Origin: Octopus sinensis
Taxonomy: Eukaryota
Length of the DNA: 64,000 nucleotides
Assembly: GCF_006345805.1 (NCBI RefSeq)
Contig: NW_021832415.1
Coordinates: 1-64,000 of the forward strand
Direction: 5' to 3'
The notes beneath the pieces were generated by a model. That model ran no database searches, had not been told where the DNA came from, and worked only from the letters and a program-made list of their open reading frames with translations. This document shows, in pieces, positions 14,418 to 64,000 of this stretch (the first letter of the stretch is position 1; every line of letters starts with the position of its first letter). The position numbers and the translations under genes are program-made.

Positions 14418-15830
14418 TCAGCCTAACACACCAAAAAGTTGATTATGTCGACAAATGGCAGGCCCATGTTCCAAATAATCAGCACGAGTGTGCACCACCT
14501 TCTTAAATTCAGGCTAAACCTCAAAAAAACACCCAAAAAACCGTCGAGGCCATCATCGAACACCCAAAAAACACAGCAAACATTTGTTTGGAATGAGCAT
14601 TGACCACAACCTCCATCAATTTCCCCTAAAAAATCAACAAATATAAACAACCCCTTGTTCCCGCGCTCCCACATGTTTTTTCAAGTCCTGTTCAACTCGT
14701 CGGTGAAGATTAGGATAACACGTCGACCCCCCACTAAAAACTATATTCTAAAAAAATCAATAAGCGCGGGAAAAAACCTTAAAAAGTCCTCTACGGACAT
14801 CGATAGGGCAGTCCATGACTGAGGAGAGATGAGTTTGTCCAAAGACGTGTTGAACTCAGAATTGAAGAGATCAGGTTGGAAGAGGAGTTCAGGGGCCATG
14901 AACCGTTCATAGGCCATGTTGAATTCGAATGGCTTGTTGGTGACGGGATGAGCCCCTTTGAATATTTTGAGTATTTTTTCAGGCGTGGATTCAAATTTGT
15001 CAAATTCATTGACAATATTTTTGCAGACATAGCAGTGTTGTTCCTGTCATTTATCAGTTTTATTTACTTTGATTATTTTGGCTACGTCGTAAACTGATTC
15101 TGGGGGGATTCCATTTTCTCTGTCGCGGATTAGTTGTTGAGTGAAGGCTGTCATTTCCGTCCCCGCAATCGGGACATATTTCATAGCAGTCCCAATCGCG
15201 TAACAATCAGCCTAAAATATTCCTATTTTTTGTACAATTGGAATTATATGAGTCAATCCATGCCCAGAATCGACCACAATTCCTGTAGTTGGCCTATCTT
15301 TTGAGTCCCGATTGACCCAGGAAGCCATCAAGGCCATCACAGCCTGAGTTCCAATATACATTCCACGCACACCAAAATTCTCAAACATTAATTCTGCTAA
15401 GAATTCTCTGTTCTCAGGAGTATTTAAGGGTGGTTCGGTCTATTTAATGATGACTTAATCACCAAAAAGAATAGATGGTTGGTGGGGTCTACTCCAAGGA
15501 AGGAATATATCGACGAACTCATTAGTTTCTCATAGAGTGTGTAGTCGTGGATTATTCCGTGTTTCATCGGGGACTACGTGATGGTTTATAACTACTTTTT
15601 GTGTTAGGCTTGCATGTGCATATATGTCGTCTCCTATTGCGTAGTCGAGGTCTTGCAGCACTTTGGGGACTACGCCCACTTTGCCCTTTCCTGTGCTCTC
15701 TTTTACTCCCACGTATGAGGGGATTGTGTACTGGGGGATCTCATGGCCGGCGAATCCCATTTTTGTCCGTCTAGATTATTTGTAGAATGTACCCTGTCCC
15801 GACATCGATAATACAAGGAAGAGTGTCCAT
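14418..15830 (-). CDS. ARP3: Actin-related protein 3, about 8 micro-introns; one apparent 1-nt deletion at ~14826
   Basis: [119 protein letters not shown]. Measured introns include 22, 22, 23, 24 and 23 nt. Confidence 0.95.
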
Positions 15831-20770: not shown

Positions 20771-22655
20771 TGTCACAGGCCACAACTGTTACTCCGCCAG
20801 ATATGTTACACTAAAAATTCATATAAATAGAAATATAAACTTTTAAAATTAAAAATTAATACAAAACATAACCTAATTGTTCGCAAAAATATGCTTTTCT
20901 GAATAGAAAAAATTTGGACTGAAACATGAATTTTTTCCCAAAAACCAACATACCGTGTAAAATATGAGTTTTAAATTATTTAGCAATCTATTTAATTTTG
21001 GCTTATCCATATCTTTTTTTTATTAAATAATTATTCTTTTTTTTTAATAAAAAAAATTTTAAAAGCCTCTTATTAGTTTAAAACGTTTTCTATCAAGGAA
21101 TCACAAAAAAGAGGATCATTCCCAATTTTAATAAGCGTGAAACATGTATTTTCTCATACATGTCACCTGTCTCACTTGTATTGTTACTACAAAATCGTCT
21201 TTTGCCACAATTGTGTATTTCACCATCTCTAATCCATCATAAAGTGGATATTGTCGTTTGTTAGCGTCATTATCTTGCCTAAATTACATGTTTATACATC
21301 CCAAATACCTTAAGATTACTATCTCTCCTACACTAAAAGTAGCCTCGTCATACTTCCATTTTCTTCTCTGAGCCATTTTATCAGCTGCCAACAGAATATT
21401 TACATACGCTTCATTCCTTTCCTCTTCCAAATATTCTATGTCATCATTTTGCAATAACAATGATTCTAGTTCCTCCTCTGATGTTTCAATAGGATATTTT
21501 ATGCCCATAAATAGATTAAATGGGACTTTTTTTGTGGTGGAATGGACAGTATTGTTATAATCAAAAACAATGTCTTTGATTATATCGCAATAGCGTCCAA
21601 AACATTCATCAGAGTAACTTTTAGATGAAATCCATCTTTTGATACTCTGATTTAGTCTAAAGAATAATGTTATCTTACAACCTTTCCACCTGTCCCTGTA
21701 CCCAAGGAGCCTTGGTCGTCCACGGACATGTTTAATTTTGTACTTTTCACATAAACGGGCGACATGGTCATTGCAAAATTCTTTACCATTGTCTGTATGC
21801 AAGATCAATGGTGGCCCAATATAATAAAAGATGTTCTGAAATAACGAAGCAATTTCATGAGCTCTTTTGGTAAAAGATAACTCAACTATCGCGAATTTCG
21901 AAAAAGAATCGACATTACAAGAATCTAATCTTTATATAGCCAAAAGTACCCAGTTATAAGAATCATTAATATCTGAATATCTCCTTAGGTCCACTAAATC
22001 GGCGATATACCGATCGCGACTCCGCCTTGCAATGATCGGCGTAACTGGGGGTTTAGTAGCCAATGATTTTTTTGACTAAAAAATTAATAAAAAAAACTTA
22101 AAACTGGCAAGGAATACATCGTTTTATGACACGATTGATCTCTGCACGTGATATTCCGTGGTATAAGCGCGCCAATTTTGAAAACAACCGGTCTCGACCA
22201 AAATGATTCAAATTATGTTCAGCCAATTGAAATAAACATTTATTATGCAAACTTCAATATATTTATCTTTAAGTTCAGCTTCATCGCTGCAGAAAAATCT
22301 TAATTTAAGTCCATCTTTAGTGATATATGGAGCTCCATCCAAAAAATCAAATTTATTTGCTAATTTCAGTAGTCTTGATCTTTGCATCCGCGAAAGCGTC
22401 CTGCTGACGAATACGAGCTCAGGATTGCTCTTAAGTTCCTTAAGTAATTCTAAGTCTTCCTTTGTTACTTGCACTAAACGCATTTTTAACGTGTATTTGT
22501 AATTTAAAAAAACATCAATATTTTTTAAAAATTTATAAGTTTTCTTTGATTTCATAGAAATATACCAAAGGATTCATGTTTTAAGTTTTTTCCAACTTGA
22601 CAATTTGATGTTGGTGTAAACATATCTGGCGGAGTAACAGTTGTGGCCGGTGACA
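20771..22655 (-). mobile_element. Ginger-type DNA transposon (TGT...ACA), ~40-bp TIRs, 6-bp TSD TTTATA, intron-containing integrase, now defective
   Basis: TIR TGTCACAGGCCACAACTGTTACTCCGCCAGATATG occurs at both ends, with TTTATA on both sides. Protein motifs: H..H.GRD..C..C zinc finger, YIADLVD, LHTDNGKEF, GQVER. Confidence 0.92.
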
Positions 22656-31707: not shown

Positions 31708-32115
31708 AATTGATAATTCAATAATAAGATTGTTTGAAGTTTATCGATAAATTGACAGATTAACATTAATTGAAGGTCAGTGTAACGCGCATCCCATACG
31801 TATCATTTGGCCCATGTCACATAATAGTTTATTAATTATAGAAATAACATCAATATGACCAATAAAAAATAATATGACTTATATGACTTTTGGTTGCCCT
31901 AGTCAACACTAATGCTTGCACTTTCGATGTTAAAACTCGGAAAATCCTATATAACTAAGAAAAACCGCTGTAAAGACAACGAATCTTCTTGCAATATTCC
32001 ATTATTTCGTTTTATGATTCAAATCCTCTCCGTACTAAACTTTCTCTATTGAATTTTGACACTTCCTCCTTGTTCCCAGCTGATTTTCAAAAAATAAAAT
32101 TGAATGATTCTAGAT

Positions 32116-32662
32116 CAGCGGTTCTCAAATGCGGCCCCCGGGGCCGCATGTGGCCCCCAGGATTTTTTTTGCGGCCCCTCTAGAGTAACTAACTTTTTTA
32201 ATTTTTTAATAATGTTTAAATTTAATTATTCATTCTTAAGGTTAAACATATCCATAATTGGTGATTTCATTAATCAATTTGAAGCACGTTTTGGAGTACA
32301 TTATAAATTTAATTTTTAGAATTTTAAAGAATTCCTTCCTTTAATGAAAATATTCGTAACTCCATTCACCGTGGAAATTAAGGATGCGCCTGCAAAGTTT
32401 CAACTAGAACTCATTAGTTTGCAACATGATATAGAACTGGCGGCATTATTAAAAAATGCGTCCATTATTAATTTTTACGAATTAATTCCTCAAGACAAAT
32501 TCAAAAATATAGCACACAATGCATATATGAATCTACATATTTATGCGAATATATTTAGTAAAATGGAAAATATAAAAATATATAAAATATTTTTTGTGCG
32601 GCCCGCGAAGCTAATCTTAATTATCGATTTGGCCCTTGAGCTAAAAAGGTTGAGAACCCCTG
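32116..32662 (+). mobile_element. Non-autonomous hAT (Buster) element, 547 bp, 8-bp TSD TTCTAGAT
   Basis: Termini CAGCGGTTCTCAA and TTGAGAACCCCTG; TSD at 32108-32115 and 32663-32670; remnant APAKFQLELISLQHD...INFYELIP. Confidence 0.95.
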
Positions 32663-33069
32663 TTCTAGATAATTAGTAAGCTCAGAATTATACAAATTGT
32701 GAACAATGAAAGCTTATTGGTCTCTAGGAGTGATATAAATAATCTTTTAGAATATTCAAAAGATATGGAAATATAATTATGGCTGTTTGATTAACTAATT
32801 GATCCAATTTCTTAATGACAAAGACACTTGAATATGTCTAAAGTACAATTTAAAAGTGCATTTGGACCACAAAATGGGATGTTTTGTGGAATAAGTATGA
32901 ATTATCAAATTAATTTCAATTTTATAAAAATATCGCCTTTAAATTAAACAATTTAAAATGAAATTGATTATTGACATTTTTCAATATGTAGCTAATTATC
33001 TGACCCCGAGTCACTAATTTTATGATCGGCCGTAAGTTTTATAGGAATTTTGTCAAAATAAATTAGTTT

Positions 33070-40865: not shown

Positions 40866-41120
40866 TAATTTATATAAAGTCTTGGAATTAATATTAAGTT
40901 TAATTATATAAATTTTTCTCAAACTTTGCGTGCTAGATTTGCGTTTTAATGTCACGGGAAGAAAGCTTATTCTGGAGTTAAAGCTTAAAATTGTCCGAAA
41001 ATTGTTTCATGAGCGAACGAGATATTGTCAAAAAATATAAAATTAGTAAAGGTTATCTGATAATTCTATTGTTTGAGAGCAGTATCTAGAATGAGACAAA
41101 ATAACATGAACTCTTTAAAT

Positions 41121-42464
41121 CAGTGGTTCTCAACCTGGGGTCCGCGGACCCCTTAGGGGTCCGCGAATGATTCCAGGGGGTCCGCGAGATTTTTCTGAAA
41201 CTTTATTTAAATGTTTCTATTTAATGATAACAATTTTAAATTAATTTATAATAGAATTAAATCATAATTAATAATATCTCTTTTAGATATATTATAAATT
41301 AATATATTTTAATATTCAATAATACTGAGGAGGCTAAATTACTTTAAAGCTGAATGTAACTCAATTATTTATAAAAATCGTATATATATATTTATTTTTT
41401 AGTAAAAGTTAATAAAATTTTTAAGCACGCTATTGATATGAATTCCTCGAATGTTATTAAGATACCCAAATATAATCCTGATTATATTAGCAATGCTTGG
41501 CTTTCATTCTGGCTTTAGAGGCCAAGTTAGACTTGCTAACCAGGAAACGAAACATATGCATTGTATGCTACATCGATATGCACTTGCTGCAAAAACATTA
41601 CCTTCAGATTTAAGATATGTTCTCGATGATGTCGTACATATCATAAATTATATTAAAAAGAGTGCTTTAAATTCGCGCATTTTCAGACTTATTTGCGAAG
41701 AATTTGAAAAGAATGGAAAGGCTTTGTTATTCCACACTGAGGTGAGATGGCTATCTCGGGGAAACATTCTTGCCAGAGTTTTTTCTTTGAGGAATGAATT
41801 ATGTCAAAAGTTTTTTCAAGAATAAATGGAAGAGTCCCAGGGACGATTGCGACTGACTCGAGGACAGTGAGACGAACTGAGTAATTTGGATCATGTTGAA
41901 TCATGTAAAGAAAGGCTTGGATTAAATGGGTTACTACCCTCAATTACTGGACACTTTGAATCTGTGGGATCTTGGAGACGGTTTAGCGACCGAACGGCCT
42001 CAATTCGTACGTGAAACTTTACGTCTCTAACTCTGTCCATCATTGTCTTGTGGATAAGTTCGACTATTTTGAAGTCGAGTTCTGTTTCATCTGGAAAAGA
42101 ATTCAAGATCTTGTTTATGATTTGACAGCAGTGAAGTCGGACATTAAATTTTAGAAAGGCTAACATATTTATGCGAACATGGCTTCTCAGCACTTCTCAA
42201 TATAAAAAATAATCATTGCGCAAGACTGAATATTGAAGATGACATCAGGGTTTGCTTGTCGACAACCGAGCCTCTTATTGAAAAAATTGCCTCGAAAAAA
42301 CAATATCAACCTTCTCATTAATTTTCTCTATTGATTTAATAATAAATTTTGTTTTTAGATAAGTAAAATTTTTTGACAAAAAACTTAATAAATATGTAGG
42401 GGGTCCGCGAAATTTTTCATTTACTCACAAGGGGTCCGCGGACAAAAAAGGTTGAGAACCACTG
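41121..42464 (+). mobile_element. Non-autonomous hAT (Buster) element, 1344 bp, 8-bp TSD CTTTAAAT, carrying host-gene cargo
   Basis: Termini CAGTGGTTCTCAACCT and AGGTTGAGAACCACTG; subterminal GGGGTCCGCG repeats; TSD at 41113-41120 and 42465-42472. Transposase pieces HCMLHRYALAAK..HTEVRWLSRG..LRNEL and TYLCEHGFS..KQYQPSH*. Confidence 0.97.
41801..42160 (-). pseudogene. NCAPG: Captured genomic fragment of condensin I subunit G (HEAT repeats) with a 22-nt intron
   Basis: NVRLHCCQIINKILNSFPDETELD...DRVRDVKFHVRIEAVRSLNRLQDPTDSKCPVIE/AFLYMIQHDPNYSVRLTVLESV..TLPFILEKTFD matches CAP-G; GT-AG intron at 41916-41937. Confidence 0.9.
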
Positions 42465-43603
42465 CTTTAAATAATGGGTCCGTACAATCATATCGTCTTA
42501 GTAAAATTTCACAGATAAGAGACAGTCTGTCGCAGAAATTCGATAAAATTGTTTATGAATGCTTCTTAAAAGCAAGATTTCGTTTCAGGACCTATTTTAA
42601 AACGTTGCTATAAAAGTAGGTAGGAATTTGAACTATACCTCATTCAGAGGTTCGAATGGTTGGCTTGAAAAATTTAAGAAAAAACACAATTTGTCATTTA
42701 AAACAATACAAAGTAAAAAAATCGTGTACTATTTCTTGCCTTGGAATTTTTTTGATAAGTTTTTTTGATAAGTACGATGTATGTTAATAACTATGGCATT
42801 GAAAATATTTTTAACTGCGATGAAACTGTTTTGTACATTAAAAGATTAACATAAAAATAATTTGTAACTTCAGATGAAAATTGTTTTGGAATTAAAAGGA
42901 GTAAAAAATCACTATTTTTTGTCGGTCAGTGCTTGTAGCGAAAAATTGAAACCATTATTAATAGGAAAATATAAATCCCCACGTTGTATGTATAATTTAA
43001 ATTGTTAAACTGCGGATAAATTTAAAGAAAATGCTGAACCTCAATTTTTGGGGAAACCTCTGTTATTTGGGAATTTTTTAATAGGTCCCCAAGATAGAGA
43101 TCATACTGTATTAAGTACAAATACAGGCAAACGGCATCTTTAGCTTGCGCACTTTTAAACAGAGATTCACACAAATTCTCATTTTCTTGTATATGATTGT
43201 ATATTTATTGCCAATCAATTGCAATAAAAATGGTGCTAGACATTTTTGAGTAAATATTTAAACATCAAATTATTTCGAATATGAGTATCAAATTGGTACC
43301 CAGAAAATTTAGTAATGTCACTAGAAAAAATTTTAAATGTTTGTGAAAAACTTAAAAATTGAAATACATTAAAAAAAGTCGATTTATAGCAAATGTAATT
43401 TTTCGAGACTATAAACATCACCCATTCCCATTTCCTCGATATATTGTAAAAGAAAATACGAACCAATAAATAACAACAAATATATTTCAAAATTTTATTA
43501 AACACGTTTTTAATCATTCATTTAAGTTTGATTGTCTAATTAGGTGTATAGTCTCGATCGTTGGTAATGGCCAATTTGTATTATTTGGATGACCAGTATC
43601 TGA

Positions 43604-46990: not shown

Positions 46991-48710
46991 GGTTAAGATT
47001 TATTGTTTAATATAGGGAGGTACACCAGATTTTAACTTAATCATAAGTTTATTATTTAATAAAATGATAATTTTTACTATTTAAAATAGTATTTTCGTTC
47101 AATCAATTAAAAAATACTTCTCAGCAACTTCTGACAAAAATCAAAAAATTGCATTTTTTTACCAATTTTGATAACATACAAAAGGAGATTTCTTTACTCC
47201 TACTCCTATATTTACTTATAAACGAATAAAGCTAGAATATGGATAGTGCCCGATTATACTTTAGCCTGTTTGTTTATCTTACATAAAATTAAACGAATAA
47301 ACTTGGAAAATGTCTTTTAATGGTCAGATGTTCATATCCCAAAGAGAATTAATCACACATCAACCCAAATTCTCTAAACATCTTTAAATTAAAAAAAACT
47401 TATTGCGATATGCGGACACACACAAGGAACGTTTCATATCAACATTTGAATAAATAGTTGTTATGTACAATTAACGGAATGATAAAGAAATATATCAACT
47501 CAATGACAAATACACAGTTGAAGAAACAGCTTGAAAAATTACGTTGATGACTCATCAAGAAAAGCATTGTTCAAAATGACTTGAGATCAATTAAATGTAT
47601 GGCAAATTTATATAAACTGGCTACAAAGTCTGTCAGCAAAGCAATGGTTGTTCAAAAGAATCTCCATAGCGATTCTAAGGGACAACGCATTCTTTATCAT
47701 AAGTAATTTTGGAATAAGAAATAGAAAAAATAAACTCATTTATAACCATAATCAATGAGAATAATGACATTGTATGAATTTAGAAACAAGTTTTTCCACA
47801 TTTGTTTTTATGTTTGTAAGACGAAGCTGTAGATCTCCTCAACAACGTCTAAGCGGTTAGGCGAAATTGCTGGAATTCTGAATTTTTCTCCAATTGTGCG
47901 AGGTTTATCAGATTTTGCGATGAGTAAAGCAATATTATATGATACAAAAGGAATATCTTCATTCCTTGATTATCAAAAGTAAATATATTCGCCCATTTCT
48001 GTTGATTTTGGTGTTGTATCATTGGTTGGAAAATTTTGACGAAAACTAACGAACTATTCTTTTAGTTACTAACTTTGTCATTTTGTAAAATATTAGCCAA
48101 TTTATTAACTTTTATCTCAAGTACAGCTGATTTATTAATATCTATCATTTTAATAATCGTGGATTGTTTTTGGACAAAATTTTCAGGTCATTGATGATCT
48201 TGACCGACTGGTAGGCACTTTTATGAATTTTTCAGTTAATACTCAAATGGTTCATAATCTAAACAAACAGTTGTGCTGACAATGAGTCCTTTTGACAATT
48301 TGTCGATCTCATGATTGTCCTGATTTCATGCTTGTTAATAATTAATTTATGTTGCCTTTTAACACCAGTGAATTACATACTTGAGGATTGTTTTAAAAAT
48401 ACAATTCATTTTTTAGATTTGTAAGTTATATTGTAATGCGCTGAAATTACAACTGTCGGCGAACCAGCCTATGCGCAACAAAAACTATAAACTCATCATT
48501 GGTGAGTAAAAAATCAAAAATATGCATTAAATACTACCTCGTTTGTTGTCCAAGATAATGTCATCAAAAGATTATTAACGTGGGAATGAGCATCACCCGC
48601 AGTGTATTTCAACTAGATAGGTATGTAAAGTGACTTGATTTGATCACGTCGAAGACTCAATTTTAATTAGTTTATTTATTTACTAAAGTTATATTTGTAC
48701 AATATTTACA

Positions 48711-49011
48711 ATGACCTCTAATGTTGTGATAGGGCAGCCCTTCAGTAATATGGATATTTATTCAGAACAAAAATCAATAAAATCGAATATATTCAGTTTA
48801 ATTGTGAATCAACCAATATTTACACTTGGTTGGATTACTTAAAGTAATTTCAGGATTAACGGGAGCAGGAGTGTCCGTGATTGTCGGATTGCGTGCCATG
48901 TCCAGAGGGGATCAGAAACTGTCGCAATCAATGATGAAGACTCGTGTGGTCTCACAGTTCGTTGCCTTTTGTGGTCTTATCTACGCAATATCGAAAACCA
49001 CTAAGCACTGA
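48711..49011 (+). CDS. HIG1-domain protein (HIGD2A/Rcf1-like), 2 exons, intact
   Basis: MTSNVV...IVNQPIFTL/GLTGAGVSVIVGLRAMSRGDQKLSQSMMKTRVVSQFVAF; 25-nt intron at 48829-48853. Confidence 0.9.
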
Positions 49012-51564
49012 CTTGTTATGTTTAAAACCTATCTGTTACATCTAAACTTTTCAAGTCTATTCAAATGGTATAAATAAGTCCATTCTTTTCCTCATAAGAA
49101 AACAATCTTTTATTAACAAAGTCGTTCAAACTGTTTTACCTGCTGCTGCACGTTATTAAAGAAATATAGATAGACAGTCTCAGATACTCAGGATTAGCTG
49201 TATCGTTCCGAATGGCACGTGTTTTCCTCATTCGGTCTAAATTTAAACTTGGTTTTTTATCCATGTTCTAGAAAAGTGGATCAATAAGACCTACTTTGTT
49301 AGAAAATTGAGCAGCCGTGAGTTGGCGGTCGAGATAAGTCAGATAACTCGAATTCAACTTTTCAAACTACATTCAATAGACTCTAACATTCAACTGTCCT
49401 CATGTGGAATCACAATTGATGCAATATTGACCAGAGTGATTCTACAGGCCATTCGGTTTGATGTAATGTTAGAGAGGCATGTTGAATAACTCTGGAACTC
49501 AAAACAACGAAATGGACTGGCTGACATGACAAAGTGACTATACCGAGTAATTAAGGCAGATATATAGGCACATCGCCACTCCCGTGTTTGCAGACCTGTT
49601 TTCCCTCACATTCCTTAGCATTGGTCGTCCAATGCCAGTCAAACAGGTGGTTTTCAGGACAATAAAAGTCACGGTCCAACTCAATTACCCAAAATCTGGC
49701 CTTCTGCCTTTCACGAACACTTTTTTTGCCAAAATATCCGAATAATATCACTCACTGAAAATCCATTTTTGCATTCCAAAATTTACACGCATACAAGCAG
49801 CCAAATGCTTGGTTTCGCTTCGTCTGCCTTGCTTCCCTGATGCTCCATCACTTGTGAGTAAAATAGAACATAGCTGGTAAAAATTGATGTTTGGCCATTG
49901 GTCATTATTTTATAGACAATGAGAGATTAATAAACTAGTATCATACTTTGTCAGGTTATTCTCTTTTGTTAAAAATTTGAAATATTTACGAGTCCAAACT
50001 GAAACTGCGAAACATCACCGACATGAGTCTCTTTCGGCCAGACTAAACAAGAACATAAAAATTTGTTGAAGAAACTGACATTTTTGGAAGAAAGGTTATA
50101 ATTTCGAGTGATTTGGGATATTCTCGAATACTCTTAGGCAAACTAATAATAATAGAAAGTACTCTCAGAGATTGTCTGGTTGACGATGTGCAGAAGTGGT
50201 GAGTGCAGTGCGACTATTCGATTTACTTTACGAGTTGATTTGTAAGCAAAATAGAGAATTCTCGTTAGTTACGAACCCATAAACGCCTTTGGCAATAACG
50301 ACTATCATTGTTTGTGATTTTGTGTTAGTTAAGCGACTTACGGCCGGGTTAGTTGTAAGAAAAATTTAAGATATTCTGGGTAAGGTCAAGAATTAAGCGC
50401 TCGGCATTACGTCAGTTGAGGGAGGGAGGAACAGGGCTACGTCTCCGTCTGCTATTCTCAAAAACTCATTCTTGTTTATTAGGCGTTGTTTTTGGTCCGT
50501 TCTTTGCCATTTTCACAACTCAATGTCATCTTTAAGATTAAAAAAATAAATACATTTCCAACTCAATTTTTGTTAACATTGATGATTGATTAAAAAATAA
50601 ATTAAACTCTGTGGTCAATCGAGACAAAACCACAGAGGTTTCTTTTTTAGTCCATTTTGTAGTTTTTTGGCGAGCAGCAAGTACCAATAACATCAGAAAT
50701 GTAATACTAAACAAACAAATAAAATATAGTTTACATGAGATCTCTTCTTAATAAAAATAAAAATTATTTTATTAAAATTAAGTTAGTAAACTATGGTTAA
50801 CCTATCTTTAAAAAAAGCCTAATAAATTAAGCACGCTGATACACGTAATTGGTTTAGTTTGTGTTATTATTGGTATTTTTCACATTCTTATTTAATTGAT
50901 TTGGAAGGAATAATCTTTTATGAACTTTCTTTTACTGATTAAAGAATTTGAAATTCATATTTTTATCATTTATACGATTTTATTCCTTCAAAGTCAATTT
51001 TTTGTATTATTTTAATATGAGTCATTTATATATGCAAACTATCTGAGATGATGGTTCAAATGATTTTTTCTTCTTTATCCTATCTTCAAAAACACCTTTA
51101 TGCTTTATAATTATATCTAGAGTCATTTCACGAAACTAAAATATTGATTATTAAAAATATTTTTGGAGAGTTCTGCTTATTCGCTCAAAGTCGGTTTGGG
51201 ATAGTTCTAAAATTGCTCTATATTTATGAAACCTCAATTTGTCAAGAATTTGTGTAATCAGACGGACATTCCCTGAAAATTCCGGTAAGAAATTCTTTGA
51301 AAAAATGTAATTTTGTCAACTCCGTTTTTATCTTAAAGATTAAAAAATAAATACATTTCCGACTCCCATAGTTGTATTTTATTGTTCTTCTGGAGTCTGC
51401 GGCAAGCAAGACTTCTCCATAATATTTGATTTTTATAATTGTAGTTCCACACTCAAATTAATTGCAAGTTAAAACAAATTTTCATCACTTTACATCTGAC
51501 AAAAATTATTTTGGCTTCTCTTTTTCTATTAATCGATTTGATTTATATTTTTCAAATTATAATA

Positions 51565-52340
51565 CAGTGGAACTTGTCTAAACCGGACTCCGACGGGACC
51601 ATGAAAATCGGCCGGTTTATAGAGAGATCCGGCTTATCAAGGTTTTGCATTAACTTGCATTTATTTTCAAAACGCTTTTTCTTGCTGTTTCCATTTTCAT
51701 CGTACACTCCATGTAATAAAAACCGGATTTTCGAATGCTTAATTTTTTTGATGTTCTGTTTTTAATTTTAGACTTTTTTTTTAATTTATAATGATAATCT
51801 TCGTAACTTTTCTTTTTATAATTTTTCAATAATCTTTTTGTACAGCTAAACTGACTATATTAAATTTTTTCTGTGTAAAAAAAAACCGGATTAGAAAAAA
51901 AGTCAAATGATCAATAATTAATGTGTCCTCCGTGTGCCTTATAAAGCTCAATGCTTCTTCTTGGCATGCTTTCAGTTAATTTTTTCACAAATTCCATTGG
52001 TATTTCGTCCCAAATTTTTATGATATTTTCGCATAAATCCTTTTTACTATGCAGCTTTTTTTTACTCAGTTCTTCCTTTATGTAGCTCCACAGTGTGGAG
52101 TCCACACATGTTCAAATCATTAGTAATTTTAGTTCTGCGTCTTCAATCCAAAAAATCGGAATTTTAGGCTATTTATTCGTATATAAACTTTTCCATCAAC
52201 AAGAGAAAAAGTTTCTAAATGCTGTTTGACTTTATATCTCTCTTTCTTTCCAAAAGTTCATCGAAATTTTGGGATTCTTTACATTTTTTGATTTTTGACA
52301 ACGTATTTCTAGTCAAAACCATAGACACATTTTTCTTTTT
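51565..52340. mobile_element. Cluster of DNA-transposon remnants: pogo terminus, Tc1 C-terminus and Ginger N-terminus; duplicated at 61681-62440
   Basis: TA|CAGTGGAACTTGTCTAAACCGG terminus; LWSYIKEELSKKK..ESMPRR..KAHGGHINY (minus); TFSLVDGKVYIRINSLKFRFF (minus). Confidence 0.75.
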
Positions 52341-52347
52341 GAAAATA

Positions 52348-54054
52348 CAGTACGATCCCGCCCCAATAGAAAAGTGCCCCAAATATAGAGGGTGCCCCTA
52401 AGATAGAGGGTATATATAATTTTTACATTTTAAAACCGATTACCAACGGATGCTCTTTATCTCCTTCCATATTTGTGCATAATAACAGTGTTATTCGTTT
52501 TTTAGAAAATTTTCCTGAAGCCCTTGATTCGGAGTCAAGAACTAATGTTTTTTTGGAGTACATTTGAAAAAAAGGGCAGTTTCATCGCAGTTGTAAAAAT
52601 TTTTCGATCCATATTTTTTTAACATGGCTGCAAAGCGTTCATATGAATCTATAAGCAAAACGGGATCCACTAATTGTTCTTCTCCAGAAATCGTGAGTGT
52701 TTTTATTTTATACTCTTCCTTAAAGCGTGAAATCCATGGGTGAGATGCTTTGAAATTTTCAATATAAAATCGTTGAGCAATTTTGAGTGCCATTTCGCGT
52801 ACCATTTCATTAGTTATGGTGTGATTACAGAAACGTTTGTTCTGAATCCATGCATATAGTGGTTCATATATCTTATCAGTACAACTTTTAAATGTAATAT
52901 TTCTTTTTGTTTGTGACGCCTTGATCAATACAATTGCATTTTCTTCAACGTTGAATTGATCACTCCAATAGGCATATTAAACCGCTGAGCCAAATTTTCT
53001 TGAGTAACATCAGGATTATTTTTCTTGAAATCAATAACTTCCAGTTTTTGTTGAATTTGATAAGTTTTTCTTTTTTTCTTCATATTGTTCACCCTTGCAC
53101 ACATGGTTTACTACAAAGAAATAGCGAGGAAAAATTATTTTAAAATTTTATCAAAAATTTTAATTTTCGTTATTTAAATATTCGTTAAATATATTTAAAT
53201 ATTCACTAATACAAAGAAAAAAAATTTTATTTTTGAATTTATCTAAGGAAAAACGTAAAAAAATATTTTGACTTTCGTAAAATGAATATTTTCGTTAAAT
53301 TTTTTTTCGTTAAATGGATAGTCTACTGTATCTGTATTTTTAATAATAAAATATGTTTTTTCGTATTAAAGAAGAGGAATTAATTTATTCTATGAAAAAT
53401 AATCAGTTATTTTGAATCCAGTGTTATATTTATTTCTTAGAATCTTCGACATTTTTATCTTGAATTCATAGTATTCTTTGAGTCCTTTGAGTCCAAAATT
53501 TTTCTGTTGTTAAGGTTCGATGCAATTTTTTTTGCAACAGTTTTCAGGAGAAATCCTGAAACTGAAATTCCATCTTCTCTCAAATTTTTAAAAACTTCAA
53601 AGACTAATCGATCAATTTGAATAGAAAGATCTGATTCAAAGTTCTTAAACGAGTGTTCATCAGAGCACGTTTCTGCTTTTGAAAATCCTTTTACAATTTC
53701 TTTTTTAATTCTTGAGACAGTTCCTTTCCCAATATTATATAATCGACAAATTTTTCTTTCAGAATATCTCCTTTCATTAATGATTCGGAAATCTTTGCTT
53801 CAAGTTCCGACTAAGCTTAGCTGGCATGCTTAAAAATATTTAAAAATTAATTTTAATAAAGAATAAAAATGAAATAATAAATTTTAATATTATCGATTGA
53901 AAAAGTGCCCCAATAAGCGGGGTTTCGTAGCTTCTTATTGGTCAAAAAATATACAAAAACTGAAAAATCGTTCAAAATAATTTTTATTAAAAAAATCGCC
54001 CCAAAAACAGAGGGTGCCCCAAGGCCGGGGTTTTATTGGGGCGGGGTCGTACTG
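52348..54054 (-). mobile_element. pogo/Tigger element, 1707 bp, 21-bp TIR, TA TSD; absent from copy B
   Basis: CAGTACGA(T/C)CCCGCCCCAATA at both ends with flanking TA; empty site with a single TA at 62447-62448; HTH remnant SERKICRLYNIGKGTVSRIKK at ~53460-53830. Confidence 0.95.
52440..53328 (-). mobile_element. Nested second pogo/Tigger fragment
   Basis: Has its own terminus CAGTAGAC at 53328 with TA. CENP-B HTH (LYAWIQNKR..FKASHPWISRFK) and NFYNCDETALFFK. Confidence 0.8.
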
Positions 54055-56859
54055 TAATTGATAAATATGTATTTATGACTGTTAATAAATTTCAAAATAA
54101 AGTTTTTAATAAAATTAATTATTAAGTCTTTTAATTCTTACAGCCTGACATCAAGAATGTAATCTGAACAAAAAAAATTTTAAATCGTAAAAATTTTAGA
54201 CATATTCACGTGTTAATTGTGAAATAATAAGATGTTAAGAAATTTCCCATCAAATTTATAAGGACCTTAAATAGACACAAAAATGTACACTCTATCATGG
54301 GATCTCCTATTAATAAAATTTACGTGGTTGATTTAGTTATATGTCGTGTTTATTTGATTCGATTTGGAAGAACTAGCTCTATCAACTTTCATTTACTTAT
54401 TATAGAATTTGAAATTCAATTATTTTTATCATTAATTTTGATTTTATTTCTTTAAAGTCAATTTTTTATTATTTAGACATTTTTATATGAGTATATTATC
54501 TGAAAGGTGACAAAGTTTAACAAAAAATATTTTCTTAGCGAATAATTTAAACATTAATTAAGAGAGGAATTAAAAGGCAGTCCAGAATATCTGGAATATA
54601 AAAAATTTCTAGAGACGTAAAGAAATGAATAAGTCAGAAATGCAACTTATCAAATTGAGATATAAGAGGTCCAGTTAGGTCGATTGTAGTCCACAGTTCA
54701 GTGAGTCGAACAAATGTCTGAAGATTTATGATAAGTTTATAGATTGCCCGAAAAGACTCGAAATGGATGAAATAGTCTACAACTTGATATATATTCATGA
54801 TAGTTATTTACTTGCTATTCGCGAGTAATTTTTTTATTATCATAATTACCCTGGACTTCTCCAGTGGAACTATACTCCTCGATATTTATCAATTTTGTAC
54901 CGAAATGTCGCTTTGTGCAAATAAAACAGCATTTGTGGGTGACTTTTTGGTATCTCAGGTCTACTCTCTTTGAATAATATCAGCATTGAAAAAAAATGAT
55001 TTGCCGACAAGTCCTTTTCTTATCTCCTGGATAGCTAATCTCTAATGAATGTTCATAGTTTTGTCATTTATTTGTGTTTTTTCTAAAAGTTTATCTGTTT
55101 AATGAACAAGACGCAATTCTATAAGGTTCTTCAATAATTAGATATTTGATTGTCAGCTCCGATTGATTGAATTAAAAGGACTCATCTAAAAATTTTAATA
55201 AAATTTCTTTTTTTCCTTTATTTATGGTCTTTACTGTGATTATTTCTACTTTTTCGCACTAATTTACCGAAAAGCTATTTTTTAGAATGTTTATTCTTTA
55301 TTTAAAGTCAGGCAATAGGTTAATATCTTTTAATAATTTTTATTTAGTAAATATGATTTTGACCACTAAGAATCGAAGTAAGTTTGGGCAGTATTTTAAA
55401 ACTATTTTTTAACAACTTAAATATAATAACACACTAGCGGATAAAAACCAACAATATTTGGTTTGAATATAAAAAATATTAAATTTACTAATATTAGGGC
55501 GTGTCGAATGAATCAAATTGACTATTTTTTAGCAATTAGTTATAGAGACGTAAAGTACTCTATAATCAATTGTAATATTATTTTTAATTAAGAATAGATC
55601 CGAAAGAAACAAAAACTCATAGTAAAGAGTTTAGTCGGCCCTAAAATATTACAACAATATCAAACAAATTCATTCCCTGTTATTATCCTTATCTGTGGAG
55701 AAAAATATCAAACTTATAGACAAAAAGTGAATATCATTATTAGAGTCGACAATTCAAAATTATATATTTTCTTGTTTGGGACAGTTAATTAGAATTGTAT
55801 TCTGGAAATAATCAAAGACTATTTTCGTTTGTTTCGATCATTTAAAAAATATGAACAAAATTAGTGTTGTGAGTTTATATTTAATTTTTTGATACGATTA
55901 GGGTCTTTTATTTTTCTAATTTCAATTTTTCTAAGGAATACAAAAAATTAGAACGAATATTTTTTAAAAATGCTAATGACTAAAATGCTATTTTAATTAG
56001 TTTAAATGATTTATTATTTCTCCAGTAACATGTACGACCGAAAAGCCACTATTCCGTGAATCACTGTGCCGATGGATGAGATGACCTGACATTAAGAGGA
56101 AGACATACCGCCGCCGCGATTATAGAGTTGGGACTGACATCCTCAAACATGACTCTACTGTTACTTCCCGAAATGATAGCCGAAATGGCGTAGAACACGC
56201 ACAGGAGTCCATTTAGAATATTTCACCCATGTGCACGTGTTTTTCATTGAAGCGAGATTGAGTTTGAAGAAACATAATGCAATGTTAGTAGATTGGACAG
56301 AGAGACGTCATGCCTGTGAATACCACGATCCACATCACCCTGAAACCCCACTCCTCCCCCATCCACACGCTGAACCCGGGATTGACAGAAGCACTGATCA
56401 CCACTGAAATAGCCACACTCTGCTCAGTGAGGTCACAATCATACAAAAAGCACACTCTTATCCAAAAGTGATTAGACTTGAAATAGCTCTTGTCGTATAT
56501 TTGGATTCGTCTGGACTTTGTTCGGGAAGTGACATTCTGTCGGATTCCAATAAAATAAATGAATAATTAACCCAATTTACTGATTTTATTAAAATAATGT
56601 AACGGACAGGCATTAATGATATATAAACATATTCGTATTAGATGAACAAGAAATTATTATTATGGTAAAATTTCTACAAAAAGGACTATTTATAGACTAA
56701 TTGAGGGCATACTCAGTCGTGGCTTATCGATATAAATTCAAGGCATATTTTGTGAGATTCTTAATATATTTATAAAAATGAATAATTATTTAATTATAAA
56801 CACAGTAAAGTAAATTTATTATTTAAATAAAATATTTAAATTAATTTATTTGTTGTGAT

Positions 56860-58038
56860 GCAAACCCACTCACTTATTCGCCCTTCTGGTCCTAAAAACA
56901 TATTCGCCCTTTCCTCCCACAATCCACATTCCAACATGGATTCAAGGAAGGATTGTCAACGACCTCCTTCCTCACCACACTAACAGATTTCATAAATGAA
57001 GGACACAAAAAGAAGAAATTGCAGGAGAAATCGATTGTATGCACTATCGACATTCAAAAAGCGTTTGACTCCGTTCCAAGGAAGATCCTAATTCAAAAGA
57101 TATTTGGTACAAATATTTCTACACCTATGAAGCTATGGATAGCGAATTTTTTGAGCGGACGTCGTGGAAAGTGTGCGTCGGGAACGAGAGTTCAAGATCA
57201 CGTTTATTGCCCAATGGTGTACCCCAGGGTTCTCCTTTATCCCCGACCTCTTCAACTTGTTTCTGAATGATCTCCCGGTTCCTATGGATAATAATGACAT
57301 ACTACTCTCCTATGCCGATGACATAGTTGTCGCATCAAGGGATGTAAATGTCGAATACGCGAAGGAAAGACTACAAAGAATACTGGACGACTTATATGGA
57401 TGGCTATATGAAAACAGACTACATGCATGTTCCGAAAAGTCAGCAGTCACTCTATTCACGAAAAACAGGAAGATGGGGACGAAAACTATTGAAGTCACGC
57501 TGAATGGAGTCCCAATACCACAAGAAAACACAGAAGATATTGGGTGTAACGTTTGATACTTTCCTCTGTTTCTCACCTCATGTTGAATCGATCGTGTCAA
57601 CCTGTATAAGAAAATCAATTTTGTGAAAGCCTTTCTTTGGAACTGTGGGAGAACTTGTCCGCCAGGGGTAGAGACCCTTTACAAGCAGTATATCGAGCCA
57701 ACAATAGGCTATGCATGTGCTGCTTGGGGCTGTAACCTGGCGGCAACGAACCAACTAAAAATCGAGAAAATCCAAGAAAAATCCATAAACCTACTGAAGG
57801 ACCATACCGACAGGAAAATTATCCATCGAACAGTGGAGTCTCTCGTAGAGGCAAGTAAGAGGGATCGTGGAGATGGACCACAAGCATTTCACCGTACATA
57901 CAGAAAGTGTGTGGGATCACGGTCTGAACATCGGGAAAAGATGGCTCGACTGTTGAGAAGTGTCGGAATCACCTGACACGTTAGTTAATGGTTAAGACGG
58001 TGATTCTGTTTTGGCTTAATTAATAATAATAATAATAA
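56860..58038 (+). mobile_element. 5'-truncated Jockey/I-like LINE with (TAA)n tail
   Basis: QHGFKEGLSTT, TIDIQKAFDSVP, WIANFLSGR, PDLFNLFLNDLP, SYADDI, YKQYIEPTIGYACAAWG; (TAA)6 at 58021-58038. Confidence 0.9.
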
Positions 58039-59070: not shown

Positions 59071-59212
59071 GTTAGGGTTACGTTAGGGTTTGGGTTAAGG
59101 TTAGGGTTAGATTTTGAATATTTATGTTGTCACTTGCCAACGTTAGGGTTTGGGTTAAGGATAGGGTTAGATTTTGAATATATTTATGTTGTCACTTGCC
59201 AACGTAAGGGTT
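59071..59212 (+). repeat. Degenerate TTAGGG-like repeats within a ~60-bp tandem unit (2 copies plus a partial)
   Basis: GTTAGGGTTACGTTAGGGTTTGGGTTAAGGTTAGGGTTAG; units at 59081-59140 and 59141-59202. Confidence 0.85.
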
Positions 59213-59501
59213 CATAATCTAAACAAACAGTTGTGGTGAAAATGAGTCCTATTTGACAATTTTCCAATCTCTTGATTGTCCTGATTACATGCTTGTTAAT
59301 AATTAATTTAAATTGCCTTTTAACACCAGTGAATTACATACTTGAGGATTATTTTAAAAAATACAATTTACTTTTCAGATTTGTAAGTTATCTTGTAATG
59401 CGCTGAAATTACAACTGTCGGCGAACCAGCCTATGTGCAATAAGAACTATGAACTCATCATTGGTGACTAAGAAATCAAAAATATGCATTAAATACTACC
59501 A

Positions 59502-59618
59502 GCCATGTCCAGAGGGAATCAGAAACTGTCGCAATCAATGATGAAGACTCGTGTGGTCTCACAGTTCGTTGCCTTTTGTGGTCTTATCTACGCAATATCG
59601 AAAACCACTAAGCACTGA
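59502..59618 (+). pseudogene. 5'-deleted duplicate of the HIG1-domain gene
   Basis: Retains only AMSRGNQKLSQSMMKTRVVSQF..KH*; the upstream region, exon 1 and the intron are deleted. Confidence 0.9.
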
Positions 59619-62600
59619 CTTGTTATGTTTAAAACCTATCTGTACATCTAAACTTTTCAAGTCTATTCAAATGGTATAAATAAGTCCATTCTTTCCTCAT
59701 AAGAAAACAATCTTTTATTAACAAAGTCGTTCAAACTGTTTTACCTGCTGCTGCACGTTATTAAAGAAATATAGATAGACAGTCTCAGATACTCAGGATT
59801 AGCTGTATCGTTCCGAATGGCACGTGTTTTCCTCATTCGGTCTAAATTTAAACTTGGTTTTTTATCCACGTTCTAGAAAAGTGGATCAATGAGCCCTACT
59901 TTGTTAGAAAATTGAGCAGCTGTGAGTTGGCGGTGGGGATAAGTCAGATAACTCGAATTCAACTTTTCAAACTACATTCAATAGACTCTAACATTCAACT
60001 GTCCTCATGTGGACATCACAATTGATGCAATATCGACCAGAGTGATTCTACAGGCCATTCGGTTTGATGTAATGTTAGAGAAGCGAGTGAAATAACTCTA
60101 GAACTCAAAACAACGAACTTGACTGGGTGGCATGATAAAGTGACTATAACGAGTAATTGAGGCAGAGATATATAGGCACATCGGCACTCCCGTGTTTGCA
60201 GACCTGTTTTCCCTCACATTCCTTAGCATTGGTCGTCCAATGCCAGTCAAACAGGTGGTTTTCAGGACAATAAAAGTCACGGTCCAACTCAATTACCTAA
60301 AATCTGGCCTTCTGCCTTTCACGAACACTTTTTTGCCAAAATATCCGAATAATATCACCCACTAAAAATCCCTTTTTGCATTCCAAAATTTACACGCATA
60401 CAAGCAGCCAAATGCTTGGTTTCGCTTCGTCTGCCTTGCTTCCCTGATGCTCCATCACTTGTGAGTAAAATAGAACATAGCTGGTAAAAATTGATGTTGG
60501 CCATTGGTCATTATTTTATAGACAATGGAGATTAATAAACTAGTATCATACTTTGTCAGGTTATTCTCTTTTGTTAAAAATTTGAAATATTTACGAGTCC
60601 AAACTGAAACTGCGAAACATCACCGACATGAGTCTCTTTCGGCCAGACTAAACAAGAACATAAAAATTTGTTGAAGAAACTGACATTTTTGGAAGAAAGG
60701 TTATAATTTCGAGTGATTTGGGATATTCTCGAATACTCTTAGGCAAACTAATAATAATAGAAAGTACTTTCAGAGATTGTCTGGTTGACGATGTGCAAAA
60801 GTGGTGAGTGCAGTGCGACTATTCGATTTACTTTACGAGTTGATTTGTAAGCAAAATAGAGAATTCTCGTTAGTTACGAACCCATAAACGCCTAAGTTAG
60901 TAAACTATGGTTAACCTATCTTTAAAAAAAAGCCTAATAAATTAAGCACGCTGATACACGTAATTGGTTTAGTTTGTGTTATTTATCGGTATTTTTCACA
61001 TTCTTATTTAATTTGATTTGGAAGGAATAATTCTTTATGAACTTTCTTTTACTGATTAAAGAATTTGAAATTTCATATTTTTATCATTTATTACGATTTT
61101 ATTCCTTCAAAGTCAATTTTTTGTATTATTTTAATATGAGTCATTTATATATGAAAACTATCTGAGATGATGGTTCAAATGAATTTTTCTTTATCCTATC
61201 TTCAAAAACACCTTTATGCTTCATAATTATATCTAGAGTCATTTCACGAAACTAAAATATTGATTATTAAAAATATTTTTGAAAGTTCTCCCTATTTGCT
61301 CAACAGTCGGTTTGGGATACTTCTAAAATTGTTCTATATTCATGAAACCTCAATTTATCAAGAATTTGTGTAATCAGACGGACATTCTCTGAAAATTCCG
61401 GTAAGAAATTCTTTGAAAAGATGTAATTTTGTAATTCCGTCTTTATTTAAAAGATTAAAAAATAAATACATTTTCGACTCTTATAGTTGTATTCTATTGT
61501 TCTTCTGGAGTCTGCGGCAAGCAAGATTTCTCCACGATATTTGATTTTTTATAATTGTAGTTCCACACTCAATTAATTGCAAGTTAAAAACAAATTTTCA
61601 TCACTTTACATCTGACAAAAATTATTTTGGCTTCTCTTTTTCTATTAATCGATTTGATTTATATTTTTCAAATTATAATACAGTGGAACTTGTCTAAACC
61701 GGACTCCGACGGGACCATGAAAATCGGCCGGCTTATAGAGAGATCCGGCTTATCAAGGTTTTGCATTAACTTGCATTTATTTTCAAAACGCTTTTTCTTG
61801 CTGTTTCCATTTTCATCGTACACTCCATGTAATAAAAAACCGGATTTTCGAATGCTTAATTTTTTTGATGTTCTGTTTTTAATTTTAGACTTTTTTTTAA
61901 TTTATAATGATAATCTTCGTAACTTTTCTTTTTATAATTTTTCAATAATATTTTTGTACAGCTAAACTGACTATATTAAATTTTTTCTGTGTTCAAAAAA
62001 CCGGATTAGAAAAAAGTCAAATGATTAATAATTAATGTGTCCTCCGTGTGCCTTATAAAGCTCAATGCTTCTTCTTGGCATGCTTTCAGTTAATTTTTTC
62101 ACAAATTCCATTGGTATTTCGTCCCAAATTTTTATGATATTTTCGCATAAATCCTTTTTACTATGCAGCTTTTTTTTACTCAGTTCTTCCTTTATGTAGC
62201 TCCACGCATGTTCAAATCATTAGTAATTTTAGTTCTGCGTCTTCAATCCAAAAAATCGGAATTTTAGGCTATTTATTCGTATATAAACTTTTCCATCAAC
62301 AAGAGAAAAGGTTTCTAAATGCTGTTTGACTTTATATCTCTCTTTCTTATCCAAAAGTTCATCGAAATTTTGGGATTCTTTACATTTTTTGATTTTTGAC
62401 AACGTATCTCTAGTCAAAACCATAGACCCATTTTTCTTTTTAAAAATAATTGATAAATATGTATTTATGACTTTTAATAAATTTCAAAATAAAGTTTTTA
62501 ATAAAATTAATTATTAAGTCTTTTGATTCTTTCAGCCTGACATCAAGAATGTAATCTGAACAAAAAAATTTTTAAATCGTAAAAATTTTAGACATATTCA

Positions 62601-62707
62601 CGTGTTAATTGTGAAATAATAAGATGTTAAAAAATTTCCCATCAAATTTATAAGGACCTGAAATAGACACAAAAATGTACACTCTATCATGGGATCTTTT
62701 ATTAATA

Positions 62708-63393
62708 TAGGGTTTTCGGATCAATATAATAACTTTTCGAATCATATAATAATTTTTCGAACCAATATAATAATTTTTCGAATCAATATAATAATTTTTC
62801 GAATCAATATAATAATTTTTAAATTCAAAAAGAGTAAATTATCGTTATTCTTGAATCACTTCAGAATTTGAGCATCTATTCAAATACGTTAACATCTTTC
62901 TGTAGAAGGATCCGCAATGTTCACTTGTTATTTCGTTGAATTTAGATGTAATTAGGCATCTAAGATCTTTTTCATTCTTGGCTTTACCACGGACTACCAA
63001 GTTTTTCCATACTGAAAAAACATTTTCAATAGGATTTAAAAATGGACAGTATGGTGGCAAAAAATTCCTGTAGTTGATACTTCAGTATCATTTTCCAGTC
63101 CACGGTAGTGTAAAAATAGGATTAGATATTATTTGTCGGCGAACCATCGCTGGTTCGATTGAATATTCAGAAGCATTTTGATTATGTGAATCCATTAACG
63201 GTAAATTCAGGTCAATAAAATTTAAATTTTATTTAAATTTAAAAATTATTATAGATTCGAAAAATTATTATATTGGTTCGAAAAATTATTATATTGATTC
63301 GAAAAATTATTATATTGGTTCGAAATATTATTATATGATTCGAAAAGTTATTATATTGGTTCGAAAAATTATTATATTGATCCGAAAACTCTA
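62708..63393 (-). mobile_element. Non-autonomous Tc1/IS630-like element (686 bp) with long TIRs built from 21-bp sub-repeats; absent from copy A
   Basis: Ends TAG(G/A)GTTTTCGGA with flanking TA; 5-6 copies per end of TCGAA(T/C)CAATATAATAATTTT; remnant PPYCPFLNPIENVFSVWK; empty site near 54305-54320. Confidence 0.92.
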
Positions 63394-64000
63394 TAAATAA
63401 AATTTACGTGGTTGATTTAGTTATATGTACGTGTTTATTTGATTTGATTTGGAAGGACTAGCTCTATCAACTTTCATTTACTAATTATAGAATTTGAAAT
63501 TCAATTATTTTTATTATTTATTTTGATTTTATTTCTTTAAAGTCAATTTTTGATTTTATTTCTTTAGAGGTCCAGTTAGGTCAATTGTAGTCCACAGTTC
63601 AGTGAGTCGAACAAATGTCTGAAGATTTATGATAAGTTTATAGATTGCCCGAAAAGACTCGAAATGTATGAAATAGTCTACAACTTGATATATATTCATA
63701 ATAGTTATTTACTTGCTATTCGCGAGTAATTTTTTTATTATCATAATTACCCTGGACTTCTCCAGTGGAACTATACTCCTCGATATTCATTAATTTTGTA
63801 CCGAAATGTCACTTTGTAAAAATAAAGCAGCATTTGTGGGTGACTTTTTGGTATCTCAGGTCTACTCTCTTTGAATAATATCAGCATTGAAAAAAAATGA
63901 TTTGCCGACATGTCCTTTTCTTATCTCCTGGATAGCTAATCTATAATGAATGACTATAGTTTTGTCATTTATTTTTGTTTTTTCTAAAAAGTTTATCTGT

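Follow-up and report, generated by a model that had tools for sequence, protein, structure and literature searches.

The 64,000-nucleotide stretch of contig NW_021832415.1 analysed here, hereafter the window, carries at positions 41121–42464 a 1344-bp non-autonomous hAT transposon of the Buster type, in which the remains of the transposase gene flank a segment that aligns, in antisense orientation, with the condensin I gene NCAPG. The element is bounded by perfect 16-nt terminal inverted repeats (TIRs), the left TIR CAGTGGTTCTCAACCT (41121–41136, plus strand) being the exact reverse complement of the right TIR (42449–42464, minus strand). A perfect 8-bp target-site duplication (TSD), CTTTAAAT, with TA at positions 4–5, abuts the TIRs at 41113–41120 and at 42465–42472. 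By analytic estimate, a perfect 16-nt inverted repeat with an abutting 8-bp direct repeat is expected ~1e-5 times per window, so the TIR/TSD structure did not arise by chance. Three subterminal GGGGTCCGCG repeats follow the left TIR (41137–41189, plus strand), the first of which is part of the palindrome GGGGTCCGCGGACCCC, and the right subterminal region (42322–42448, plus strand) holds two more. The exact GGGGTCCGCG motif occurs six times in the window, in each case inside the element and near its ends: at 41137, 41156, 41177, 42400 and 42431, and as the palindromic partner at 41143–41152. With one mismatch allowed, 7 matches were found against 0.33 expected, a number that none of 100 shuffles attained. 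The intact termini, the subterminal repeats and the perfect TSD with its TA at positions 4–5 had been described in the original prediction, and we recovered all of them at the same positions. The element is itself nested in a decayed pogo/Tigger-like transposon (40950–41120 and 42473–42700), the joined flanks of which translate as ..SERDIVKKYKISKGYL.. and ..SNGWLEKFKKKHNLSF.., with several stops.

What is left of the transposase amounts to two plus-strand remnants of ~105 and 53 amino acids. Remnant 1 (..AMLGFHSGFRGQV..HTEVRWLSRGNILARVFSLRNEL; 41489–41802) reads in frame +0 as ..EVRWLSRGNILARVFSLRNEL up to 41801 (..LRNEL); remnant 2 (TYLCEHGFSALLNIK..KKQYQPSH; 42162–42321) reads in frame +1 from TYLCEHGFS.. 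at 42163 to a stop codon at 42319–42321. The element encodes no intact DDE transposase and is thus non-autonomous: the stretches with the first and second catalytic Asp residues have been lost. A protein search with both remnants returned 158 matches; the best, at 98% identity, is annotated ‘zinc finger BED domain-containing protein 5-like [Octopus sinensis]’ (P0002), and the remaining matches, at no more than 65% identity, bear ZBED5-, ZBED8-, FAM200- (FAM200C-) and SCAND3-like names. The precomputed domain of these relatives is PF27046, FAM200-GTF2IRD2-like. A local copy of Pfam gave no match for the remnants, nor for a 418-residue conceptual transposase assembled from a longer family copy described below, and a PDB sequence search with the transposase pieces returned nothing significant.

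ZBED5 is Buster1, within the Buster family of hAT elements (PMC3606216), and Buster elements possess 8-bp TSDs and 14–16-bp TIRs (PMC12637253); the 8-bp TSD, the subterminal repeats and the 16-nt TIRs found here, the latter agreeing in length with that report, are those of a Buster element. TSDs of the form nnnTAnnn occur at three related insertions, namely CTTTAAAT at the present element, GTCTACAC at the longer family copy, and TTCTAGAT at 32116–32662 of the window. The named relatives and the three TSDs, rather than a tree, support assignment to the Buster-type hATs, and the 98% ZBED5-like match bears out the earlier attribution. A TIR-like pattern search revealed the insertion at 32116–32662 (within 32108–32670), which is another Buster-type hAT, 547 bp long and likewise non-autonomous. 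Its TIRs are CAGCGGTTCTCAAAT and GGTTGAGAACCCCTG; it has a perfect TSD, subterminal GCGGCCCC-type repeats and a remnant of a transposase C-terminus, and it belongs to a different family from the element at 41121–42464.

The segment between the transposase remnants, the cargo, lies on the minus strand and measures 354 bp by BLAST (41799–42152) or 350 bp by junction analysis (41803–42152). The minus strand of 41803–42152 encodes NVRLHCCQIINKILNSFPDETELDFKIVELIHKTMMDRVRDVKFHVRIEAVRSLNRLQDPTDSKCPVIE, followed by the 22-nt GTAGTAACCCATTTAATCCAAG (41937–41916) and then by AFLYMIQHDPNYSVRLTVLESVAIVPGTLPFILEKTFD. Two partial exons are thereby delimited: an upstream part (NVRLHCCQ..SKCPVIE; 41938–42152), which begins at residue 128 of human NCAPG, and a downstream part (AFLYMIQHDPNYSVRL..ILEKTFD; 41803–41915), which extends to residue 234, with a GT-AG mini-intron at 41916–41937 between them. 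Once spliced, the cargo reads as 108 stop-free residues that align without gaps to residues 128–234 of human condensin CAP-G (6igx_B, E=3e-21) and match Schizosaccharomyces pombe Cnd3 at E=1e-14; Pfam gave only weak HEAT and PDS5 matches, below the cut-off. By these alignments, the cargo is condensin I subunit CAP-G/NCAPG placed antisense to the transposase, in keeping with the original reading of the insert as stop-free, minus-strand CAP-G sequence with a 22-nt GT-AG intron.

A protein search with the cargo returned a single match, a 141-residue ‘condensin complex subunit 3-like [Octopus sinensis]’ protein (P0001). The parental-type gene could be identified on positions 325716–346171 of VCDQ01004506.1 (assembly GCA_006345805.1), deposited as Octopus sinensis and here termed L001. 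Window 41799–42152 matches L001 9753–10106 at 98.0% identity over 354 bp, gapless and with the intron included; the upstream exon part corresponds to L001 9753–9967, the intron is identical at 9968–9989, and the downstream exon part corresponds to 9990–10102. The L001 NCAPG gene is compact and, by tblastn, colinear with full-length references over residues ~26–769. After removal of five GT-AG introns of 25, 33, 22, 30 and 27 nt, its first 373 amino acids align to human NCAPG residues 41–385 (E=3e-53); none of 1.84 billion cluster representatives is more than 44% identical to the L001 NCAPG fragment. As the donor gene has the identical 22 nt, and as their removal restores the gapless alignment, the 22 nt constitute a genuine intron, which places the capture at the DNA level. 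The original prediction had argued the same from intron retention, and had suggested the comparison with a parental gene that is reported here. An RNA-mediated origin, by which the cargo would be a piece of a processed retrocopy or cDNA, is favored by the compactness of the coding sequence and by nothing more; the cargo retains the 22-nt intron of the genomic gene, a poly(A) tract is absent, and the fragment begins and ends within exons. We rejected a retrocopy origin on account of the retained intron, and regard the likelihood of any RNA-mediated route as close to negligible.

Seven differences, located between 41801 and 42095, separate the cargo from the L001 gene: three are synonymous, and four nucleotide changes alter three codons; the intron is unchanged. 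Every one of the seven runs in the direction of A/T: C>T accounts for four, among them a CC>TT tandem, G>A for two and A>T for one. CpG contexts are not affected, and the change at 41801 falls in the overlap at the left junction. These substitutions bear no sign of purifying selection. They bear on a functional exaptation of the cargo, by which antisense or small RNA from a transposon promoter would regulate CAP-G, or by which the cargo open reading frame (ORF) would furnish a truncated HEAT-repeat protein. The antisense orientation of the cargo relative to the transposase reading direction, the retained 5′ end of the element and the still-open spliced frame are as exaptation would have them. 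Against this stand the lack of constraint, with three synonymous changes versus four changes in three codons that include the CC>TT exchange of Pro for Phe; the expectation that a 110-codon frame stays open by chance at only 2% divergence; and the failure to find a predicted protein for the cargo in the database. We therefore judge exaptation to be decidedly unlikely. In principle, NCAPG could be regulated by antisense RNA, an idea that lacks support; most likely, the NCAPG fragment is a neutral passenger.

The longer family copy mentioned above permitted the remainder of the element to be read. It lies on positions 52862–75679 of VCDQ01000570.1 of the same assembly, likewise deposited as Octopus sinensis and here termed L002, which encodes the 98% transposase match. 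The copy spans L002 6615–11332 (4718 bp) and is 96–98% identical to the window element. Its right terminus is exactly the right TIR of the window element and its left TIR has one mismatch (CAGAGG..); two of the subterminal repeats are absent from it. It is flanked by its own perfect TSD, which differs from that of the window element, so the hAT family has transposed recently. The left end of the window element, the 5′ non-coding region of the family (41121–41377, plus strand), is 96–98% identical to L002 6631–6871, and remnants 1 and 2 are each 97% identical, to L002 10011–10337 and 10929–11117, respectively.

Relative to the L002 copy, the window element has undergone two internal replacements. 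In the first, L002 6872–10010 is replaced by 111 bp of AT-rich filler at 41378–41488, with L002 homology stopping at 6871 and resuming at 10011. The N-terminal two thirds or so of the transposase gene is thereby lost, together with a BED-type finger, a DUF4371-like region, the ..NESTD.. and ..CTTDGAPAM.. regions, and, in L002, ~2 kb of tandem repeats. BLAST searches of the window, L001 and L002 did not reveal where the 111-bp filler came from. In the second, the cargo has taken the place of L002 10338–10928 (591 bp, ~185 amino acids, SEYFIRENN.. to ..LLLIFPT). The original prediction that the cargo had replaced the transposase core thus holds for these 591 bp and no further: the deletion that carries the 111-bp filler, not the cargo, took away the BED finger and the regions of the first and second catalytic Asp residues. 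Nor is the L002 copy free of defects: compared with the window copy it has a 2-bp frameshift, and ~2 kb of tandem repeats are inserted in it. Mini-introns interrupt its transposase reading frame. The tandem repeats occupy L002 7400–9700 within the transposase gene, in units that read ..FKDFIM*VEDIVVVHFNQNAENFF...

The breakpoints of the cargo were read by three-way alignment of the window, the L002 transposon copy and the L001 NCAPG gene. At the left junction, transposon sequence continues through 41802 (..GAATGAATTAT) and antisense NCAPG sequence begins at 41803 (GTCAAAAG..); the microhomology consists of one shared T, or of TT-T should the difference at 41801 be a G>A change of later date. 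At the right junction, NCAPG homology stops at 42152 (..ACATTAAATTTT) and transposon homology is regained at 42162. The intervening 9 nt, AGAAAGGCT (42153–42161), are identical to 41909–41917 inside the cargo, a match with an estimated ~1% probability of arising by chance. These junctions look like the products of template switching in repair synthesis combined with end joining, in line with the gap-repair template switching first proposed for the locus.

From these junctions, we infer a repair mechanism. A double-strand gap would have formed within the element, either by excision followed by sister- or homologue-templated gap repair, or by a break in a resident copy. Repair synthesis may then have left the transposon template and moved to the genomic NCAPG gene, copying ~350 bp (exon, 22-nt intron, exon) in antisense orientation before rejoining the transposon. 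At the right end, rejoining would have introduced the 9-nt templated insertion, such as alternative end joining produces. Another, independent event of deletion plus filler could account for the loss of two thirds of the transposase gene from its 5′ side. The product would be a Pack-TIR element, a ‘Pack-hAT’, with intact ends and subterminal repeats, a passenger gene fragment and no functional transposase. Capture may have occurred at the present site or before the element inserted here; the evidence fits both. The junctions resemble those of filler-bearing deletion derivatives of hAT elements and the templated insertions of alternative end joining. They also agree with the breakpoints of animal Pack-TIRs, which show 1–36 bp of microhomology (a median of 2 bp) or brief de novo insertions and are explained by gap filling with template switching (PMC8277862).

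The same junctions speak to the possibility of an assembly chimera, in which misassembly across repeats would have fused a piece of NCAPG to transposon fragments. The locus is rich in transposable elements and lies within a decayed pogo-like element, a setting in which such an error might arise. Yet both junctions fall in unique sequence, away from repeat boundaries, the right one with a templated filler typical of repair, and perfect TIRs and TSD enclose the entire unit in correct orientation. Moreover, the cargo is 2% diverged from the parental-type gene, whereas 0% would be expected had it been collapsed from the gene. A chimera is on these grounds highly improbable.

We then turn to the genome in which the element resides. 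An apparently complete Arp3 gene at 13900–15830 of the window (minus strand) is interrupted by GT-AG introns of 22, 22, 23, 24 and 24 nt. Spliced over these five introns, it aligns to residues 7–300 of bovine Arp3 (E=1e-92). Splicing was carried out by a minimum-intron/minimum-length dynamic program, which was too permissive for the Arp3 C-terminal third and for the whole of NCAPG, and the splice junctions accepted here are only those confirmed by gapless alignment to solved structures, together with tblastn colinearity. Among 5.8 billion proteins, none exceeds 50% identity to the window Arp3. Neither octopus nor most animals could have an intron of 22 nt. Introns so short have been reported in animals only for dicyemids and myxobolid myxozoans (PMC13644364, PMC6543705); the spliceosomal introns of dicyemids are mostly shorter than 30 nt, with a median of ~27 nt (PMC6543705, PMC6736024, PMC13644364). 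The introns of Arp3 (22–24 nt), with which the cargo intron agrees in length, and of the L001 NCAPG gene (22–33 nt) are of dicyemid length, a trait shared with myxobolid myxozoans. Dicyema japonicum inhabits the renal sac of Octopus sinensis and possesses a genome of 36.7% GC and 49% repeats with very short introns (PMC6736024).

Because the window Arp3 combines 22–24-nt introns with such low identity to known proteins, we consider the window to be dicyemid-like, and rejected an octopus origin on this evidence. The window most likely derives from a dicyemid-type genome, that of a fast-evolving metazoan with ~22–30-nt introns, and both ‘Octopus sinensis’ contigs probably do as well. Two circumstantial observations point to a dicyemid: i) the 96–98% DNA identity to contigs in the assembly of Octopus sinensis, the host of Dicyema japonicum, and ii) the high divergence of the Arp3 and NCAPG proteins from anything known. 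A ciliate origin was rejected, as in-frame TAA and TAG codons are absent within exons and the proteins are of metazoan type. GC content (0.33–0.35) and CpG observed/expected ratios (0.83–0.96) are alike in the window, L001 and L002; the window ratio of ~0.96 suggests little CpG methylation. Outside the element and the cargo, the window shares with L001 and L002 few and very short nucleotide matches, the best being 38 nt at 92% and 78 nt at 78%. The contigs from which L001 and L002 were taken, of 674 kb and 854 kb, respectively, carry compact mini-intron genes with highly divergent proteins, and the span of an MGAT2 model on them implies a 30-nt intron.

The origin of the three pieces also bears on a cross-species capture, in which an octopus transposon would have taken up a gene fragment of its dicyemid kidney parasite, or the reverse, by horizontal transfer. 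The deposition of the nearest database matches as Octopus sinensis, together with a cargo that bears a dicyemid-type 22-nt intron, could be read in this way. The Arp3 gene argues that the window is not octopus; mini-introns are also present in the transposase gene of the family and in several compact genes of L001 and L002; and base composition is similar across the three sequences. It is simpler to derive all three pieces from a parasite-type genome, and a cross-species event is most improbable. The mini-introns are also relevant to the many host-gene fragments for which the original prediction had offered gene capture as a mechanism. The Arp3 ‘fragments’ at 13.9–15.8 kb are one gene with 22–24-nt introns; as mini-introns are native to the window, the apparent gene fragmentation is at least in part normal gene structure, not capture, and the impression of many fragments was probably a misreading.

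Taken together, the best explanation for the whole is a deletion derivative of a Buster hAT in which an NCAPG fragment was captured by gap repair, likely in a dicyemid genome, and we hold this account with good confidence. Several points weigh against it. The left microhomology is just 1 nt. A 10-nt match, CATTAAATTT, links the end of the cargo to the transposon 19 nt ahead of the point of rejoining, yet it went unused: the 18 nt that follow CATTAAATTT in the transposon are missing from the final product. One cargo-bearing copy is known, protein-level searches and exact look-ups of six window ORF products having yielded no second, which leaves transposition after capture hypothetical. An intact autonomous copy of the family was not found, the L002 copy being frameshifted and interrupted by repeats. 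Lastly, the L001 gene and the L002 copy reside on other records labelled Octopus sinensis, the genome of which is not necessarily that of the window, and the 2% divergence between cargo and parent may in part be divergence between strains or species.

That the gene-capturing class is not new, as the original prediction acknowledged, is borne out by the catalogue of Pack-TIRs in 100 animal genomes, which includes a multicopy Pack-hAT of Xenopus (PMC8277862). The present element likewise encloses, between TIRs and TSD, 350–354 bp of NCAPG sequence that is not of transposon origin, and the L001 gene, 98% identical and with the same intron, is its putative parent. As in the animal Pack-TIRs of Tan et al. 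2021 (PMC8277862; Pack-hAT-N8_XT of Xenopus tropicalis), a TIR transposon with intact ends carries a recently duplicated host fragment, short microhomology or de novo insertions mark the breakpoints, the cargo includes exon and intron, and the copy is young, at ~98% identity to its putative parent. Unlike those elements, it resides in a mini-intron, dicyemid-like genome, holds a whole intron within a 350-bp cargo, and keeps two transposase remnants and two separate fillers. With the classical plant Pack-MULE, Pack-CACTA and Pack-TYPE elements (PMC5861414, PMC8903248) it shares a non-autonomous TIR structure, gene fragments acquired at the DNA level and TSDs that attest to transposition; it differs in kingdom, in belonging to the hAT-Buster superfamily and in carrying a single fragment. 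Amplification, chimeric transcripts and multiple parental genes, which set the plant elements apart, are not in evidence here.

Internal-deletion derivatives of maize Ac/Ds, which belong to the hAT superfamily, contain filler DNA from abortive gap repair with short junction microhomologies and nearby or ectopic templates, and one Ac/Ds element may hold several independent deletions. Their fillers are a few to tens of transposon-adjacent bases, in contrast to the 350-bp piece of an unlinked essential gene found here. The TIR of the window element presumably resembles those of TcBuster and SPIN. In common with the Buster hATs TcBuster, SPIN and AnBuster (PMC3499496, PMC12637253), the element has an 8-bp TSD with a central TA and a 16-nt TIR that starts with CAG, and the nearest named relatives of its remnants, which are ZBED5-, ZBED8-, FAM200- and SCAND3-like, recall the Buster-derived genes ZBED5/8/9 and FAM200 (PMC3606216). 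Unlike those Buster hATs, it is non-autonomous, and the transposase gene of its family carries mini-introns. The element is new in its host lineage, as it appears, in holding a complete mini-intron within its cargo, and in that sequences of both donor types are at hand.

Elsewhere in the window, a segmental duplication of ~6 kb relates 48246–55098 to 59206–64000 at 92–97% identity with indels, one of which, ~1.7 kb at 52348–54054, is present only in the first copy and contains a pogo-like ORF (52542–52928). Retrotransposon ORFs occupy 2849–5423 on the minus strand, encoding a reverse-transcriptase-like product of 485 amino acids and a further 270 amino acids downstream, in a GC-rich stretch (41–45%). 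A reverse transcriptase fragment lies at 56953–57976 and an integrase-like fragment at 21284–21808. On the plus strand at 17074–17829, a 251-residue ORF encodes the last part of an RRM-like domain (..KFGFVEFSF..) and, after it, a tail rich in Arg and Glu, and is probably an exon of an RNA-binding protein gene.

The left and right ends that suffice for AnBuster measure ~135–240 bp and 126 bp, respectively (PMC12637253). The window element retains 257 bp of its left end and ~300 bp of its right end, and mobilization of these ends in trans is plausible by analogy. A far-reaching extension, which we consider very unlikely, is that the element is one of several trans-mobilized copies, transcribed from the transposon end, that would supply antisense or small RNAs against the single CAP-G of the dicyemid. 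If true, a transposon-borne gene fragment would regulate how chromosomes condense in an animal that consists of ~30 cells and whose germline and somatic genomes behave unusually. For users of the annotation, it matters that two large contigs in the public Octopus sinensis assembly look like parasite DNA. The element itself offers a clean and young case of DNA-level capture of a gene fragment by an animal hAT, with breakpoints that are readable base by base because the parental gene and a longer transposon copy are both available. Pack-TIRs appear to be extended by it to a dicyemid-like lineage, in which introns are so tiny that a 350-bp cargo contains a complete one, and the question of DNA versus RNA origin becomes unambiguous.

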